A DNA stretch of 64,000 nt from Prasinococcaceae sp. CCMP 1430. Lineage: Eukaryota > Plantae > Prasinodermophyta. The position numbers were made by a program, and so were the translations under genes. Below are positions 5,059 through 31,548 of this stretch, one piece after another. Numbering within the stretch: the first letter of the stretch is position 1; each line of letters starts with the position of its first letter. Under the pieces are notes generated by a model. That model worked only from the letters and a program-made list of their open reading frames with translations, was not told where the DNA came from and made no database searches. The DNA is taken from contig RQSC01001202.1 in the NCBI GenBank assembly GCA_013416795.1, forward strand, positions 101,209 through 165,208, read 5' to 3'.

Positions 5059-6714
5059 AGTGTCAGTTGGCGGGGGCGGGGGGGGGGGGAGGCACGCAGA
5101 GGCACGCCGCACGCTGCAGCACCCCGAGGCGGGCGCCGTGCCCTCCCACGCGCGCGGCCACCTGCCGATACATCGGTGGCGCCGCCTTGTAAAACGGACG
5201 GGCGCTCCCGAGCGCCCCTGCTCGCCTCGCCTCGCCTCCTCTCTCTGGCCAGCTGGCGGTGCCGCGACACTCCGGCCGGCGGCGGCGGCGTTTCGCACAT
5301 TGAGATTTGAATCGCAGTTTCGAGGCGGCACCCCGCCAGCGAGTTGGCAGCGCCGCGCCGGAAGCCCTGCGCCGGAGTGCGCAGCGGCGCCACAGCGCGC
5401 GGGACGCGCGTGGGGCGGCAAGGGGGCGCGCGCTTAGTCCTCGGGGCGCAACGTGAAGCCGTCCGCCGTCCGCCGCTGCCGCGCCGCGCCGCTCGAGGAC
5501 CGCCGCGCGCGCCCGCGCGGGCGCGGCCCGCCTCGCTCGCCTTCTCCTCTTCCGCCCGCTTCGAGTCACCTGTCTGTGAGCGGGACCTCCCTGCGTGGCC
5601 TTTGATGGGTGCCGGCCGGCGCTGTTGTTGGTTCGTTGTTGGTGTTGGTGTGTGTGTTGTTGGTTGGTTCCCTCGCAGCATGCAAATGGGGCGGGAGCGG
5701 CGGCGGCGCGGGCGGCGAGCCAGCGGGCGCCGCGGGCGCATCATGACAGGCACGGACGGAGAGAGGTGCTTGCGACTCGGCATGCCTTCCGACCTTCCAT
5801 CACATCGCAGGCGCGCGAGCTCGAGCCGCGAGAGGCTCGAGCGGCTCCTTGCAGCTCGCGCTCGCGGTGCTCGCGGTGCTCGCGGCCTCGTACCGCTCGC
5901 GCGAGCGAGCCACATTACTTTCCCGTTTGTTATGATACCTATGATCTGAGTGTACTATCCTCACGAGCCGTGGCGCACGGTCGGGGCGCATCGAGTTCGG
6001 CCTTGGCGGCGGCGGCAAGCATGCGGCGGCTGATGTGCAGGTCAAATCGCATGCGGGGGAACGCGGGGGCGTTTTCGCACGTCAAATCGCATGGGCGGCC
6101 CTCGCGGCAACGGATTTTGACGTACGGGGGGGCGAAGCCGGCGGCCGCGCGGCGCCGCGGCGCGGCTGCGGCACGGGGCNNNNNNNNNNNNNNNNNNNNN
6201 NNNNNNNNNNNNNNNNNNNNNNNNNNNNNNNNNNNNNNNNNNNNNNNNNNNNNNNNNNNNNNNNNNNNNNNNNNNNNNNNNNNNNNNNNNNNNNNNNNNN
6301 NNNNNNNNNNNNNNNNNNNNNNNNNNNNNNNNNNNNNNNNNNNNNNNNNNNNNNNNNNNNNNNNNNNNNNNNNNNNNNNNNNNNNNNNNNNNNNNNNNNN
6401 NNNNNNNNNNNNNNNNNNNNNNNNNNNNNNNNNNNNNNNNNNNNNNNNNNNNNNNGATGCCCCCGCTATCTTCCGGCGCGGGGGGCGCGGGGACCGCGCG
6501 CGCCCCGCGCAGCGCGCCCTCCGCGCAGTGCACTCCGCGCAGGGGGCGCGGCCGCCGCCGCGCTATTTTTTTTGTTCGAAGGTCATTTTGCATTGCGCAT
6601 GCAAAGTGCAGCGAAGGCAAAAAAAAAAAAAAGTCGCCCGCGCCACGACGCCGACAGCGCCGAGCGAGTTCGCGTGCTGACGCCGCCCCTCGCTGCGCAC
6701 TTGCGACCCAACAG

Positions 6715-14078: not shown

Positions 14079-17021
14079 ATGGCCGCGTCCAGTCGTTGGC
14101 CGCGCATCATGCCCCGCCGCCGCCGCCGCGCGTGGTTCTCGTTGACGAGCGTCGCCATTGCCAGCGCCGCTGCCAGCGCGTCGCTCGTGCTCGCGGCCCC
14201 CGACGACGTAGGCAATAGACACGCCCCCGCGTCGTCGGCCTACAACACCGAGTGGTCGTCGCTGGAGCTTGGCCCCGACGCTGCGCTGGCGAAGGCGCTC
14301 CTCGACGCGCGCGCGGCGCTCGAGCATTGCATGCGAGCGCGGGAGACTCCGCATTGCCGGCGGGGCTCGGGGCCGGACGTCGGTGCGTCGCTCGAGCGTG
14401 CAACGCTCGCGACTGCCACGTTCGGCCTGCGGGCAGCGCACGCAGATGCACGGCATGTCGACGCCGTCGCACAGTCGCACGCGGCCTTCCGTGGCCTCTC
14501 GAACGCCGACGCGCTCGCTCGCCAGTACGCGCGCGACCTGCCCGAGCAGGAGAGGCGGGACGTGCTGGAGGCTTTGCGGAACGCCGTCGAGGAGTGCACG
14601 CTGGCCATCGCGACCTCTGCCGAAGGCGCAGGCGATGCAGCAGCGACAGAGCACGGCTGCGAAGGTGCCGCGCGACGCCACGAGCGCAACGTTGACGATG
14701 CTGCACCCCCGATGCTGTCACTTCCCAAAGGCTCGTCGCACTGGGTAGATGCGAGGGGGGTGCCCACGCTGGTGTACGGATGGAGCACAGCGCCAGTGAA
14801 TTACGCAGACACGACGATCACCACGGGCGCTGGCAGCAGCGCGTCGAGCAGCGGTGTCGTCGATGGAGATGGCGACCAAGGCGTCGGCTCCGCCAACGCT
14901 TCTGCCAGCGTGCTCGCGAGCTTCGGCGCTCAGACCGAGTACAACGGGCGCATGGTGGACGTGGTCGTCCTGCCGGCAGCCCTGTACAGCCACACGCGCA
15001 AGAAGAACGGCAAATACCCAGTGCGTTGTGCCTTTGCGAGCGCGCACCATCCCCTCGCAGCTGGACGTTTTCACGCACGCGCCTGAGCTGACGCGGGCGC
15101 GCTCGCACGCTCGCAGGAGTGGCTCCTGCGCGGCAAAGTTTCCCTGCTCGTTGACGTCGTCGAGCGCGTGGTCCGCTCCGGCAAGGTGGCGCAGGTGTAC
15201 CTCTCCCACGGACGGCCCTCAAGTGGGAGCTCTGCGGCAGGTCACGACTCCCAAGCCATGCCACGGTGGGCCACGGAGGTGGCTCCCGAGCTCGTCGAAC
15301 GCACGGGCCACTTTTGCTCGTACGATATCACGCACCCCATCGCCCATCGAGTGTGGTCCGAGGTGCTCGCCGAGCTCGTCCCCCAGCTGGGATCGCGGGG
15401 CCTGCTCGAGTCGCGCGGGGCGGTGGTCTTCCAGCTGATGAACGAACCTGCGCTCTTCAACGCGCAGGACTTGCTTGCCTTCATGCGCGATCTGCGGTCC
15501 AGCGTTCACACACTGGCGGGCGAGATGGGCGCGCCACCGCCTCCGTGCTGGGCGAAGGCCATGAACAATGGATGGACGTCCCCTCTATCGCTCGGCGGCG
15601 CGATGGCCGGCTCGGCACCATCGCAGGACGGCCTGCCGCGCGTGGAACTTGCACGCGCACTGGACGGTCACTCGCAGGACAGCAGGCTCACGCCCAAGCG
15701 CGCGGGCTTCGGCTCGAGCCAGCTTCCCGAGGTGTCGCGGCTGCTGCCCTCGAACGTGTACTCCCTCGACTGGGTCGACACGCTGTTGACTTATGACCTC
15801 ACGCGCGCTGTGAACCCTGCCCAGCCCGTGGTCGAATCCGAGCTGCATTCGCTGTCAACCGCGAGCTGGCGGCAGGCCGCGCTGCCGCCAACGCTCGTTC
15901 ACGCCACTGCGCAGCTGCTGGCAGTCTCGGGCGTGGCATCGGTCCAACTCTGGTACTGGGGCAGAAAGACGGCGGCGCTCCCGACGCAGACCTCCACAAA
16001 TACCTCTACGACTGACGCCGTGATCACGCACTACGCCCCCGACGTCGATGCCACACAGGAGTTCGGTGGCGGCAATTTTGCGATGTCCGCCACCACCCAG
16101 CCGCTGCTGGTGGACGCGTACGTGCGCGCAGGCGTGCTGCTAAACGCACTCGTGGACGACGTCGTCGCCCTGTCGCGTGCCGAACCCGCGCTCTACATGC
16201 TCTACCCTTACGAAGCAGGTGCGCAACCCCCCGCGGAAGGCGACGACGCGCCAGACGATCCGCACGACGGCGCAGAATCGCCTGGCTCGTCCCAGGCCGC
16301 TGCCCGCACGCCAAACAGCAGCAGCGTCCACTTCAGCGACGACGAAGGCCTCGCCAGCGATGGCACACCCCTCGCGCGCGAGCTCGGCGAGCTTGGTGCC
16401 GTCTACAGCATCGCAGCTCAGCTCGGCGGCCGTGTTGGCTTCGTTGTCAGCGCCGACGCCGTTGACGCGCTGCAAGCGGGTAGCGTGCTGTTGCTCGCGC
16501 CGCTGCAGGCGCGGCGATACTGTGGAGGCGCCAAAGTCGAGTTTGAGTCAGGCAGCTCTGAGGAAGACCGCATTCAGCACGCGCTCGCGGGTGCGCACGC
16601 TCGCGGCGTGCACGTGGTGTGTGACTACGACTTCCCCTACGACGTTGCCGACACCCGTGCGCTGCAGACGCTGCACAGGCGTGTAGGCGCGCTCCTGCAC
16701 GATCCCCGGCGGCCCCTGCTATGCGTCGACGCGCTACACGAGGGCGCACTGGCGTTTGGAGTTCACTGCCGCGCGGTCGAGGTGCCATGCGCCGCCTCCG
16801 ACACAGCTCGCGGCACGCCCACGTGCTACGCGCTTTCCGTAGTGAGCATGGCGACGCGCGCGATTCGCGTGCGCGTGGAGCACGCCGCAGATGCCGGCGC
16901 GCGCGTGCGCGTGGCGGACAGCTTCACCGGCGCCGGGTCCGGCCCGGACTCGCACAACTCCACCACCCTGCATCTGGAGCCCATGGGCAGCAGGATGCTG
17001 AATGTAAGGATTGACCTGTGA
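14079..17021 (+). CDS. Secreted clan GH-A (beta-galactosidase/GH42-like) glycoside hydrolase; exons 14079-15020, 15117-17021
   Basis: Signal-like N-terminus; HDSQAMPRW, YDITHPIA, FQLMNEP (acid/base Glu), VVESELH (candidate nucleophile), QLWYWGR; phase-0 GTGCGT..GCAG intron. Confidence 0.6.
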
Positions 17022-17470: not shown

Positions 17471-18205
17471 ATGGTCGCCCCATTGCCCGAAGGCTGGAAG
17501 GCGTACCGCGACCCAGCAACGAACGCCATTTATTACGCAGCGCCGGACGGAAGGACGCAATGGCAGGCGCCGCCGCCTCCCGCGCCCACTCAGGAAATGC
17601 CCTCTCTGGGGCAGCTTGCGCAGCAATTAGACGCACTAGGCAGGCAGGTACAAGCACTCTGCAGCCAGGTAGAAGGACTGCTGCAAAGGGTGCGATTACA
17701 GTACGAGAAGACGCAAGCGACTACGCAAGAAGGACTAAGCAAGCAGGTCGCAAGGATTCGCGCACCAGACCACGCTGAAGGGGGGCGCAGCGATGCTGGA
17801 CCCTCTAAGCCCGTCAAGCGTGAGCGCTCGGAGGATGAGCCTCGCTCACCGGACCACGCCGAAGGGGGGCGCAGCGATGCTGGACCCTCCGAGCCCGTCA
17901 AGCGTGAGCGCCGTGAGGATGAGCCTCGCTCACCGGACAACGCCGAAGGGGGGCGCAGCGATGCTGGACCCTCCAAGCCCGTCAAGCGTGAGCGCTCTCA
18001 GGATGAGCCTCGCGCACCAGAACACCAGCATCGCGCACAAGGGGGTGCCCAGTGTGAGCGCCGCGATGGAGAGCCCTCTGAGCCCATCGGCGAGTCAGTC
18101 GAGGCCAGCGACATGAGGCTGGCGCGCGTGATGCATGATAAGGATATCCACGCGGATCTCCGTCAAGAGAGGAAGCGCCCGCGTCGATACGGTTACGACG
18201 AGTAA
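17471..18205 (+). CDS. WW-domain protein with a coiled coil and three 28-aa repeats
   Basis: LPEGWKAYRDPATNAIYYAAPDGRTQWQAP is a WW domain; heptad region follows; basic C-terminus RKRPRR. Confidence 0.8.
   Translation: MVAPLPEGWKAYRDPATNAIYYAAPDGRTQWQAPPPPAPTQEMPSLGQLAQQLDALGRQVQALCSQVEGLLQRVRLQYEKTQATTQEGLSKQVARIRAPDHAEGGRSDAGPSKPVKRERSEDEPRSPDHAEGGRSDAGPSEPVKRERREDEPRSPDNAEGGRSDAGPSKPVKRERSQDEPRAPEHQHRAQGGAQCERRDGEPSEPIGESVEASDMRLARVMHDKDIHADLRQERKRPRRYGYDE
17768..18019 (+). repeat. 84-bp tandem repeat x3 (coding)
   Basis: gaccacgc(t/c)gaagggggg.. units start at 17768, 17852, 17936. Confidence 0.92.
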
Positions 18206-18455: not shown

Positions 18456-21400
18456 TCACCAGTACATGGTGTTGATGATGCGTTCGTTGGGGCTCGGAAG
18501 CTGTCCGGTAGTCCCGACGCCACCCTCTCGATAGCTCGAGGTCCGCTCTGCGACCTGTGCGCAGTAGTACAGCGGTACCGGCGAGCCGACCACCTTCCCA
18601 CAGAACGCGTAGCCCGTGTGGAGCGCGAGCATGAGGCGCTGCAATGCTTCATCCTCCGCTCGATCGATGTCGGAGTGCAGCGGGATGACCTGCTCCAGGC
18701 GAGGCACGCCGAGGACCCCCTTGTGTGCGGCGAGGTAGAACGCGGACATGCGATCGCAGAGGTCATTGATCTCGCCGCTTGAGATGTCGGTGATGACCGT
18801 GCCGGGGAGCGGGTTCCCGGTCCTTGAGTCCTTCGCGTCGTGGCTCTCCGGCCACGCGTGCATGCCCGTTTTCTGCACGACGTTGTACGAAAGCTTCGGC
18901 TTGCCTCCAAGCATCTGCTTGACATGTCCTTTCTCGAGCACGCGCTGGAGGCCTTCTTCGAGCTCGCGCGTCTTTGCTGCCTCGAGGGATCCTGCAGCGA
19001 CGCCGTTCCTTAGGACGACGATCAGGTCAAGCTTCGCGCCATTGTTGCGGACGCTCCACGCCTCGAGACTGTCCTCGAAGAGCCGGCACGCGAGCTCAGG
19101 CTCAAGAAGCATCCCATTACTCGCGGCGTCTTCGTCGCCGCTCCTAAACTCGGCGCAACGGGCGACGTACTGCTGCGCGCCCTCGACGAGCGTGCACACC
19201 GTCGCAATGGCGGGCGAAGCGACCTCCGCGATGGGACGGTACACGTCAACTCCCATGACAGCGACCGTGTTCATGCCATGTGGAAGCGGCATGCTGGCGG
19301 CGTAGTTGAGCCCGCCCATCTTGGCGTTGATCTTCTGGGCCATGTTTGCCTGCTCCGAGTTGCGAAACTTCTGGAGCGTGGCCTGGCGGATCTTGACCAG
19401 CCTGAGCCCGCGCTGATCAGCGCAGAAGTTCATGTTGAACGTCCAGCCATCGTGCGAAGACATGCCTGCCATGTTGCCGGTCCCAGACGTTGGCTTTTCG
19501 CCGGGAATCACGCAGATCGCCAGGTCCAGCGGCCTGCCGAGAGCTCTCTCTGCTTGGTCGCAGAAGGCATCGACCCAGCTCCCTCCGTCCAGCGGGCTCT
19601 GCACCACGTGGACGTGGAGGGCCCTCGCGCCACACCTGTACTGCAGGCGCGAGTCCATGCGGATCCCTTTGGATACGCAGGTGCTCACGAGCTGGGTCAG
19701 GCAGCTCTCTGCCTGCCCTTCCAAATCACGACGCGGCTGGTCCGTGACCATGCACAACGCGAACGTGAAGTCGTCCGCGCCGCGCACAAAGCCCTGGCGA
19801 AGGTTGCTCATGAAGTCAAAGCCGCCCTGGGCGACCAGTCCGCGTGGCCCGTCGCGCTGGATCTCTGCACGTGCTCCGCCCTGGTTGAGCTCCAGCCTAG
19901 GGAGCTCCAGGCGCTTCGCCGTCGCCCCGTGCATGGCTGACGAGCACTCAATGCCGAAAGCTTTCATGAGCGGGTTGTTGTTGACGATCTCGCTCACGAG
20001 CCTTTCCAGGGTGCTCTTCCGGCCGGTGGGGTTGCTGTAGGTGCCGCGCCTATCGAGCATCTTGCTGAGTGCCGTCTGTGGGGGCTGGCCCTTGGCCCGC
20101 TGCCCGGCGACGATCCTGACGTGCTCGAGCGGAAAGGCCGTTGTCGACCCCGGCCTTGCGCGGATGAGCGGAAGACCAGGATACTCCAGCGACGCCCCCT
20201 TCGATTCGAAGTGGCTCGCCACGGAGATGCTGGTGTCGCCCTTCTTGAACATGTACTCACGCGCCGACTCCTCCGTCAGGACGGAGCCGGGGCCTGCGGT
20301 TGGCCGCTCCGTACCCCCATCGCGCTCGTCAGGCCGTGTGGAGGCCTCGTCGCGCTCGATGCGGGCCTTGATGAGCATTGGCTTTCCAGGACCGCCGAGA
20401 CCAGGGATGCCTTCAACCCACATCCCGTCGAGGCCGCCCCACGATGAACCTCGACCTGACTTGTCCCCGAAGAGGAAGATCTCGCGGGTCCTCGCGTCGA
20501 AGGTCGCATGACCATCCGAGCGAAAGCCACGCGTTGCGTACCCTCCGAGGAGGGACGCACCGAAGACGATTTCCGGCAGCTCTTTGTCCTTTGCGACCTG
20601 TGTCACGCCGATTGCGGCGGACACGAACAGATCCTTGCCGCAACTGCGTGTTGCCGCCTTGACGCCGACGAGCACGACACGATTGTCGTCCTGGTCGAAT
20701 GGCTCGCCCTTAAGCTTGCTCATTGGGCAGAGGACGCCCTTCTTCTCGTCAGCCAGCTGGCCGGACTTGAACGCCAGGTCCACCACCGCCTCGACGGCGC
20801 GATCGTCGCGCGCAGAGGTCTTGGTAGGGATGACAGTGGGCTTCCAAACCGTGATCTGGAAGCGCCACGCCCTGTCGCGCGGGTGTTCCAGCAGCCTGGG
20901 TTTCCAGGGGCGCTTCGGGTCCGTGACGGCCAGTGGGCCATCCTGGAAGAAGCTGCTCGGCAGCTCCGTGGGCCTTTCCAAAATGGAGCGCAGCGTGGGG
21001 TTGTGGTGTGGCGACGGGTGCGCGCGCCGTCGAGTGTCAGCCTTCGGCGCCTGCGCGGGAGCTACGACGGGGGTGCTACGCAACGCGCACGCACGTGTAG
21101 AGCGTCCCAGAAGGAGCTCCATCGTAGATGAAGGGCGTGTCCAGCATGCCCTTCTGCTCGAACATGCGAGCGATGAGCTTGCGGGTCAGCTCGCCCCCCT
21201 TCATCAGAGGGACGGCTTCGCCGCCGCTAAGCTTCGCCAATCGCACGTGGCATGCGTGCCACTCTTCCTTGGTGATGGTCACCCCAAACACGTTCACCTT
21301 GGCGGTGAACGGAGTGCCTGGGGTGACCATCGTGCCCGCCCCTGACGACGGCCTCCCCGGTCCTGGGCCGCCACCGCCCCCCGCTCCAACAGGGCGCGGC

Positions 21401-21823
21401 GTGCCGCACCTGAAGCAGAACTGCTTGGAGGCGAACACGTTGGCCCCGCACCCTGGGCAGGTCCAGTCGCCAGGCCGGCCTGTGCGCGCGAGCACGCGCC
21501 GCAGGGGCGCGCGGGCGCAGGCGAGGGCGGCCGCGCACGCGCGCGGGCGCGCGCGCAAGCGACGCATTTGTTGAAAGTTAGTGCCATGTTCTAAACCCTA
21601 TGTAACATCTATTGAGACCTAAAAACTGGACTCCATCGCTCTCACCTCCACCTGCCGTGGGACGCGCGTAGCCGCCGTAGCCGTACCCCTCGCCGCGACC
21701 GTCGCGGTCGCGGCGGGGGGCATACCCGTCGCGGTCGCCGTAGCTGCCGCCGCGGTCGCTGTAGCCGCTGCCGCTGCGGTCGCCGTAGCCGCTGCCGCCG
21801 CGGTCGCCGTAGCCGCCGCCGCG
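18456..21823 (-). CDS. AGO: Divergent Argonaute (RGG repeat + RanBP2 ZnF + N-L1-PAZ-L2-MID-PIWI), 5' end in gap; exons <21823-21646, 21479-21095, 20973-18456
   Basis: N: AKVNVFGV..FIYDG..LYTPTELP; PAZ: SISVASHF..LEYPGLPLI..FPLEHVRIVAGQR; L2: NPLMKAFGI; MID/PIWI: QKINAKMGG, VMGVDV, IVVLRNGV, VVQK, GNPLPGTV, FYLAAHKGVLG, PVPLYY; both introns are GT-AG with matching phases. Confidence 0.9.
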
Positions 21824-22114
21824 NNNNNNNNNNNNNNNNNNNNNNNNNNNNNNNNNNNNNNNNNNNNNNNNNNNNNNNNNNNNNNNNNNNNNNNNNNNNN
21901 NNNNNNNNNNNNNNNNNNNNNNNNNNNNNNNNNNNNNNNNNNNNNNNNNNNNNNNNNNNNNNNNNNNNNNNNNNNNNNNNNNNNNNNNNNNNNNNNNNNN
22001 NNNNNNNNNNNNNNNNNNNNNNNNNNNNNNNNNNNNNNNNNNNNNNNNNNNNNNNNNNNNNNNNNNNNNNNNNNNNNNNNNNNNNNNNNNNNNNNNNNNN
22101 NNNNNNNNNNNNNN

Positions 22115-30024: not shown

Positions 30025-31548
30025 GGCCGCTGCCGGAGGGGCGAGTGGGGAGGCGGCGACCGCGAGTCAGCGCGCGCGATCGCACGTCGGGACACTGGCG
30101 CGCGGTCTGCACGCGGCGGCAAAGGCGCGGTCCCTGCTGCAAGGTGACTAGGCTGCGCGTAGATCGGGGCGAGCGGCCGGCCCGCGCGCCGCGACGGGGG
30201 CGGGGAACCTGGGCGGGGCGATCGGCGGCGCCGCGATCGGCGGCGCCGCGATCGCTCCCCGGCACGCTCAACCCGCTCCCCTCCCCTCTCCCCCTCCGCC
30301 GGCATCACGCGCATGCACACACATCAATTCGCGCGAGAGGCACTGGTGCGCGCTCGCTGAAGTCCTCGCCCACCCTAGGCCACCCACCGCAGCGCGCAGC
30401 GCCTGCCGCCGTGCCATACAATCGCGCGCACATGCCCTGGCGCACCTCCCGCATCCGCAGCAACAGCCGCCCACGCGCCGCAACAGCCGCGCTGCGCCGG
30501 CGCAGCAGAGTGCGGCCTAGCGCGGGGCGGAGCTGGCCTGGCGCCCTCTCCGCCCCACCCCTTCCCCACACATGCTTCCCCCTCATCCGCCCACGCCGTC
30601 TGCTGCCGCGGCTCGCTCCGCTCGCCCCGTCAACACCCGGTGGGCGCGTCGCGCCGCGCGCATCGCCGCGCCGGCGCTGGCGCCGGNNNNNNNNNNNNNN
30701 NNNNNNNNNNNNNNNNNNNNNNNNNNNNNNNNNNNNNNNNNNNNNNNNNNNNNNNNNNNNNNNNNNNNNNNNNNNNNNNNNNNNNNNNNNNNNNNNNNNN
30801 NNNNNNNNNNNNNNNNNNNNNNNNNNNNNNNNNNNNNNNNNNNNNNNNNNNNNNNNNNNNNNNNNNNNNNNNNNNNNNNNNNNNNNNNNNNNNNNNNNNN
30901 NNNNNNNNNNNNNNNNNNNNNNNNNNNNNNNNNNNNNNNNNNNNNNNNNNNNNNNNNNNNNNNNNNNNNNNNNNNNNNNNNNNNNNNNNNNNNNNNNNNN
31001 NNNNNNNNNNNNNNNNNNNNNNNNNNNNNNNNNNNNNNNNNNNNNNNNNNNNNNNNNNNNNNNNNNNNNNNNNNNNNNNNNNNNNNNNNNNNNNNNNNNN
31101 NNNNNNNNNNNNNNNNNNNNNNNNNNNNNNNNNNNNNNNNNNNNNNNNNNNNNNNNNNNNNNNNNNNNNNNNNNNNNNNNNNNNNNNNNNNNNNNNNNNN
31201 NNNNNNNNNNNNNNNNNNNNNNNNNNNNNNNNNNNNNNNNNNNNNNNNNNNNNNNNNNNNNNNNNNNNNNNNNNNNNNNNNNNNNNNNNNNNNNNNNNNN
31301 NNNNNNNNNNNNNNNNNNGGCGCTGCGCTCGGCGGCAGGCGCTCGCGGCGCCACTCGAGGCGCCCGAGGCGCCCAGCGAGCAGCCGGGGAGCAGGCGGCG
31401 CGTGAGCGTGGGCGTGAGCGTGGGCGTGAGCGCGAGCGTGCGCACGCGCCTTGGGTCGCGCCGAGGGGGAGGGTGGGGGTGGGGGTTGGGGGGCGCCGCA
31501 CGCGGGCGCGCAGCGGCGGCGGGGGCGGCGTTCTCCGCGCCGGGCGCG

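Follow-up and report, generated by a model that had tools for sequence, protein, structure and literature searches.

The Argonaute gene and its neighbourhood

The window (the whole stretch of 64,000 nt that was analysed) is GC-rich eukaryotic DNA with assembly gaps, and its minus strand carries an Argonaute gene that matches the public Prasinoderma coloniale model PRCOL_00002850-RA (P0004). A second P. coloniale model, PRCOL_00002144-RA (P0003), differs from PRCOL_00002850-RA at 6 of the 883 shared residues, and both genome copies of the gene are intact. We searched the Argonaute exons one by one, and the public spliced product P0004 was read only. Residues are numbered from the first codon of the last exon, which encodes Pro (20972-20970).

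15168-17021, plus strand: ORF of 617 codons with no Pfam match
17471-18205, plus strand: convergent neighbour gene with a weak WW domain (Pfam E 3.5e-4, below the cut-off)
18456-20973, minus strand: last exon of the Argonaute gene, encoding a eukaryotic Argonaute with all four domains (ORF, Pfam, and AlphaFold model)
18540-19394, minus strand: PIWI domain (Pfam Piwi, 72.7 bits, 4e-20), residues 527-811 of the last-exon protein
20088-20279, minus strand: core of the PAZ domain (Pfam PAZ, 24.2 bits, 3e-5, below the 28.8 cut-off; the fold matches)
20974-21094, minus strand: intron 2 (GT..AG) of the public annotation, whose divergence among ocean variants exceeds that of the exons
21095-21479, minus strand: exon 2, which codes for a zinc finger of the RanBP2 type, a linker rich in Gly, and the initial strands of the Argonaute N domain
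21480-21645, minus strand: putative intron 1 (GT..AG), whose removal keeps the RGG/YG exon in frame with the zinc-finger exon
21646-21823, minus strand: end of an RGG/YG-repeat exon, which runs into the assembly gap at 21824-22114
6180-6455, 21824-22114, and 30687-31318: assembly gaps (runs of N), the second of which breaks the first exon of the Argonaute gene

Pfam detected Piwi and a weak PAZ domain inside the minus-strand ORF 21122-18456, and the public annotation splices an upstream exon onto the last exon at 20973. The 839-codon last exon without stops that had been reported in the preliminary description of this DNA consists of 838 sense codons and the stop codon, with no internal stop. 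An AlphaFold2 prediction of the last-exon protein, run with 86 rows, gave a mean pLDDT of 79 and a pTM of 0.83, with most of PIWI above 90. The model aligned with human AGO2 (4w5t_A) over 711 residues and all domains (Z 40.7, rmsd 3.4 Å), and it also aligned with AGO1 and Arabidopsis AGO10. AGO-clade structures outscored PIWI-clade chains, which reached ca. Z 32. In the MAFFT alignment, a count of conserved columns showed that most of those of the Argonaute PAZ were retained, as were most of those of L2. The protein has the N-L1-PAZ-L2-MID-PIWI architecture and fold of a eukaryotic AGO-clade Argonaute.

Three residues are private to the copy of the gene in the window. Residue 254 (20211-20209, minus strand), which corresponds to human AGO2 Y311 of the PAZ 3′-end pocket, is His in this copy but Tyr in the second genome copy and in every ocean variant that was read; the further private changes are G43W and A830E. 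Regarding the neighbours, the convergent gene at 17471-18205 (plus strand) contains an acidic repeat of ca. 27 residues in three tandem copies (…SPDHAEGGRSDAGPSKPVKRER…), and its GC3 of 0.65 is lower than that of its neighbours. The TARA contigs L001 and L002 likewise conserve the ORF of 15168-17021 beside the Argonaute gene; there it was called as a gene of 587 residues. The GC3 of the Argonaute gene was 0.81, similar to that of neighbouring genes. A foreign origin, considered for the lower GC content at 18-22 kb, was rejected, given this equal GC3 and the presence of introns.

The public model begins at an internal Met and leaves out both the RanBP2 finger and the upstream RGG/YG exon. The finger (PF00641) scored 31.8 bits against a cut-off of 27 and lies in frame 5′ of the annotated start; four synonymous and no non-synonymous differences were found in it among ocean variants. 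Within putative intron 1, the same variants carry substitutions several-fold above the level of exon 2, together with 9-nt and 2-nt indels, whose total is not a multiple of 3. This population variation supports the view that the finger and the RGG/YG exon are probably coding and that 21645-21480 is a putative intron. The ATG at 21567 was ruled out as a start codon, because the 2-nt indel in ocean variants breaks its frame and the ATG is therefore not a conserved start.

The catalytic tetrad

The Argonaute tetrad, its two metals, and the Thr/His anchors have been described previously (PMC10772731). To place the tetrad positions, we used four alignments: phmmer against the AGO2 chains of PDB, MAFFT with 149 homologues drawn from an exhaustive search, a second MAFFT alignment, and hhalign against a profile of 40 canonical Argonautes. 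All four put D576, N656, and A805 at human AGO2 D597, D669, and H807, respectively.

19245-19247, minus strand: Asp576, tetrad position 1 (human AGO2 D597), retained; motif GVDVYR
19101-19145, minus strand: loop 610-624 (RSGDEDAASNGMLLE), exceeding its human AGO2 counterpart by ca. 10 residues and spanning the glutamate-finger position; candidates E614 and E624
19005-19007, minus strand: Asn656, tetrad position 3 (human AGO2 D669), Asp to Asn; motif LRNG
18558-18560, minus strand: Ala805, tetrad position 4 (human AGO2 H807), His/Asp to Ala; motif YYCAQ

Position 1 was D in 146 and position 3 was D in 139 of the 149 homologues, while position 4 was H in 100 and D in 33 (H or D in 133/149). The anchors flanking these positions are nearly invariant (R655 in 100% and G657 in 99% of rows, Y802/Y803 in ca. 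90%). Since the neighbours of A805 are C804 and Q806, a one-residue shift of the alignment restores no Asp, His, or other ligand. Compared with a slicer-competent DEDH/DEDD centre, the first Asp (GxDVxH) is present as D576, and both the Asp of RDG and the His/Asp of position 4 are absent. Asn656 and Ala805 were each found in all 12 covering sequences read. With N656 and A805, each of the two metal sites therefore loses a ligand. In PDB, the AGO2 chain 5t7b_A has N at both 597 and 669 according to the phmmer alignment, and, as entry titles state, hAGO2 D669A has been used for holding uncut targets.

The glutamate finger was placed at E614 by hhalign (the Glu of GDEDAA), at N619 by MAFFT, and at L622 by phmmer, whereas counting 32 residues back from N656 without gaps leads to E624, which coincides with the start of a helix (625-642) predicted by AlphaFold. 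The four methods pick different residues because of the 10-residue insertion in the loop. An acidic residue, E614 or E624, may still serve as the finger. The preliminary description had proposed a D-E-N-A tetrad with Asp kept, the third Asp changed to Asn, and His changed to Ala. The codons of these three residues lie exactly where it had put them, and all four alignments agree on D, N, and A; its E is only a possibility on which the methods disagree. The comparison with AGO2 that it had proposed, by multiple alignment or structure prediction, thus returned an AGO2 fold, with the aligned third and fourth positions being Asn and Ala and neither Asp nor His.

Changes beyond the tetrad and selection on the gene

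To measure how far the rest of the protein has diverged, we defined a conserved column as one in which a single residue is common to at least 80% of the 149 homologues, counted the mismatches of the query, and ranked it among the 150 sequences.

PIWI: 52 conserved columns, 46% changed in the query (median of the others 8%), worst of 150
MID: 12 conserved columns, 33% changed in the query, worst of 150
N-L1-PAZ-L2: 19 conserved columns, 16% changed in the query, 27th of 150, ordinary

The decay falls mainly on the catalytic lobe, made up of MID and PIWI, and PAZ has been preserved. Two of the changed regions of the lobe are the following.

19236-19241, minus strand: Tyr578-Arg579 in place of the conserved Thr-His, the pair by which the scissile phosphate is positioned (H in 95% of homologues, R in the query)
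19320-19469, minus strand: region of the 5′-phosphate pocket in MID, with changes at the positions of K533 and Q545 and with K566 and K570 kept as K547 and K551

The Thr/His following the first Asp anchor the target nucleotide t10 and thereby allow engagement of the finger (PMC10772731). In the MAFFT alignment, the KRHHTR motif is replaced by KTGMHAW and the SH.G.QGTSRP.HY motif by AHKGVLGVPRLEQV. The 5′-phosphate pocket of human AGO2 is formed by Y529, K533, Q545, K566, K570, and R812. K533 corresponds to Ala502 (or Met514) and Q545 to Val526 in the query, the register of both being uncertain because segment 495-507, the helix with Y/K, has a pLDDT below 50. R812 is kept as R810, and the C-terminal TMYW is similar to the TMYF of canonical ends. 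The pocket is thus partly changed, and canonical guide binding itself is therefore uncertain. The pattern of decay in PIWI and MID fits a long-standing loss of catalysis and not a recent accident.

To examine whether the gene is maintained, we read 11 near-full-length sequences, namely both genome copies and a set of TARA, ENA, and Logan contigs. GVDVYR, LLEPEL, VLRNGV, and LYYCAQ were present in 11/11, and no frame break was found; VLRNGV and LYYCAQ were also present in a 190-aa TARA fragment (P0002). For the DNA of four ocean contigs (L001-L004, of which L003 and L004 share one and the same exon sequence), the pairwise dN/dS over the last exon was 0.22-0.41. The segregating codons comprised 32 synonymous and 26 non-synonymous ones, against a neutral expectation of 76% non-synonymous (binomial p = 3.8e-7). 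These results among ocean variants indicate purifying selection; the preliminary description had suggested a dN/dS comparison with orthologs. Since two tetrad positions are lost from a gene that is intact and under purifying selection, the data are best explained by a non-slicing Argonaute that is being maintained. This is in line with the proposal that the broken tetrad belongs to a protein kept for a non-cleaving role, for which chromatin recruitment, translational repression, and small-RNA storage had been named as possible examples.

Relatives and a probable non-cutting role

An exhaustive HMMER scan of 1.84 billion representatives yielded 820 Argonautes at E <= 0.001. The best non-self matches had ca. 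24-32% identity and came from a mix of taxa (oomycetes, Rhodelphis, a spider, and a smut fungus); nothing was found between ca. 32% and the protein's own cluster, and a word-based protein search returned nothing beyond its own 90% cluster. In a maximum-likelihood tree of MID-PIWI, the query joined no supported clade, and its end branch measured 5.0 changes per column, the median being 0.8. For the query, we used only this branch length and the absence of a supported sister; a grouping of the tree by intact or broken tetrads was discarded as wrong, since the glutamate column is shifted in the underlying alignment.

The supplement of the genome paper lists exactly two proteins as 'Argonaute' in P. 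coloniale, PRCOL_00002144-RA and PRCOL_00002850-RA, and its TAPscan table gives 0 for 'Dicer'; the main text dates the gain of Dicer after the split of this lineage (PMC7455551). Both listed Argonautes are near-identical copies of the gene described here, and therefore no slicer-competent paralog is annotated in P. coloniale; likewise, tblastn found no second Argonaute in the 64-kb window. The search for such a paralog that the preliminary description had suggested thus came out negative in both places. Since TAPscan applies strict rules and genes may have escaped annotation, 'no slicer, no Dicer' holds at the level of annotation.

Asn at tetrad position 3 also occurs sporadically elsewhere, in 'argonaute 2' of Chondrus crispus and several oomycete proteins, and is therefore a recurrent state. 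Like the query, the Chondrus crispus protein (P0097) and Phytophthora/Nothophytophthora P0113 and P0023 have Asn in third place (RNGV) along with other changes (S-E-N-D, D-D-N-Q, and D-D-N-H, respectively). However, these degenerate red algal and oomycete Argonautes are not specific relatives (ca. 26-32% identity), and, unlike the query, they mostly keep His/Asp at position 4. Degenerate tetrads were also seen in the eukaryotic proteins P0078 (S-D-N-G), P0106 (C-N-S-E), and P0143 (D-N-N-G), and three of the four proteins P0097, P0078, P0106, and P0143 group with P0026 in the tree. Red algae likewise have 0 Dicer in the TAPscan table (PMC7455551).

Human AGO1 and AGO4 share with the query the four-domain fold (4kxt_A, Z 40.6; 6oon_A, Z 32.3) and an incomplete tetrad in a protein that is nevertheless retained. 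AGO1 has Arg at position 4, and AGO4 has Gly and Arg at positions 3 and 4. In contrast to the query, with its 46% of changed PIWI columns, the rest of PIWI, the 5′-phosphate pocket, and Thr-His are almost unchanged in AGO1 and AGO4, and the slicer AGO2 is present alongside. The WAGO-type slicer-dead Argonautes of C. elegans have also lost catalytic residues, and they keep a guide-dependent, effector-recruiting function. However, WAGOs form an expanded family with Dicer and RdRP upstream, whereas the query represents a single gene family without an annotated Dicer and with an added RanBP2 finger. RGG-type N-terminal extensions, such as the putative one of the query, have been described in nematode and other Argonautes. 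Short prokaryotic Argonautes also have an incomplete tetrad, and their function depends on partners (PMC10772731), but they are without N and PAZ, while the query is a full-length eukaryotic AGO.

Taken together, the gene encodes an AGO-clade Argonaute of P. coloniale that is under purifying selection; its RNase H centre in PIWI is probably inactive, and its role is probably a non-cutting, binding one. Could the protein instead have kept its slicing activity, with Asn656 at the third position and a ligand that is relocated or water-mediated substituting for the fourth residue? Asn can ligate Mg2+ weakly, a residue near the active site may compensate, D576 is kept, acidic residues are available in the finger loop, and the gene is under constraint. 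Yet two tetrad positions, the Thr/His anchors, and KRHHTR are all lost, C804, A805, and Q806 offer no metal ligand, and the AGO2 construct crystallised as 5t7b combines the D-to-N change with D597N, giving a double mutant that is presumably catalytically dead; we consider continued slicing highly improbable. A decaying relic or young pseudogene of a lost RNAi pathway would account for the heavy degeneration of MID and PIWI and for the lack of a close orthologue between 30% and 97% identity among the 1.84 billion representatives, and it would fit with the related picoplanktonic prasinophytes, which are without Argonaute in the table of the genome paper (PMC7455551). We reject this explanation, to which we leave only a very slight chance, since the 838-codon frame is intact in 11/11 near-full-length sequences, non-synonymous polymorphism is significantly depleted, GC3 is at the host level, the predicted fold is confident, and both genome copies are intact.

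A serious rival, although an unlikely one, is that the protein is not guided by small RNAs at all and is an RNA-binding or scaffold protein that combines an Argonaute fold with an RGG/zinc-finger module and works without Dicer-made guides. The non-polar residues at the K533 and Q545 positions of the 5′-phosphate pocket, MID and PIWI that are the most degenerate of 150 Argonautes, the long end branch of the query (5.0 changes per column versus a median of 0.8), and the count of 0 Dicer in a lineage that split off before Dicer was gained (PMC7455551) speak for it. On the other side, the conserved PAZ and L2 positions are largely kept, as are K547, K551, and R810, and the C-terminal TMYW is near the canonical TMYF; the TAPscan rule for Dicer is strict, and a non-canonical RNase III could make guides. 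The existence of Dicer-independent guides in other systems also counts against a guide-independent role. With PAZ and a portion of the 5′ pocket retained, guided binding appears somewhat more probable than unguided binding.

Most likely, the protein would act as a non-cutting RNA-binding platform. RNA would be held through the well-conserved PAZ and the retained Lys547, Lys551, and Arg810, and targets would be acted on through partners or through the protein's own N-terminal RGG/YG and RanBP2 zinc-finger extension. Plausibly, this extension would lead the protein to RNA, to ribonucleoprotein granules, or to partners.

As Argonautes that do not slice are already familiar, the P. coloniale protein is not a new kind of system but an unusually divergent example. 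What sets it apart is that it is the one Argonaute family annotated for a deeply branching green lineage, that its decay centres on MID and PIWI, and that it carries an added zinc-finger/RGG module. A bolder reading, which we regard as doubtful, is that the only Argonaute of the third green-plant phylum is slicer-dead, has a remodelled 5′-end pocket, is fused to a FET-like RGG/YG and RanBP2 module, and works without a canonical Dicer. If true, this would mean a guide-independent or unconventionally guided pathway of RNA silencing or RNA granules, and an end-state of RNAi reduction distinct from complete loss. Catalytically dead Argonautes normally accompany slicer-competent paralogs; the small-RNA machinery of P. 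coloniale, whose lineage diverged before the Chlorophyta/Streptophyta split, would, if any of it remains, run wholly without slicing. As a natural Argonaute maintained by selection, with its catalytic lobe decayed and its PAZ preserved, the protein bears on the reduction of RNAi in picoplankton, among which Mamiellophyceae lost Argonaute altogether.
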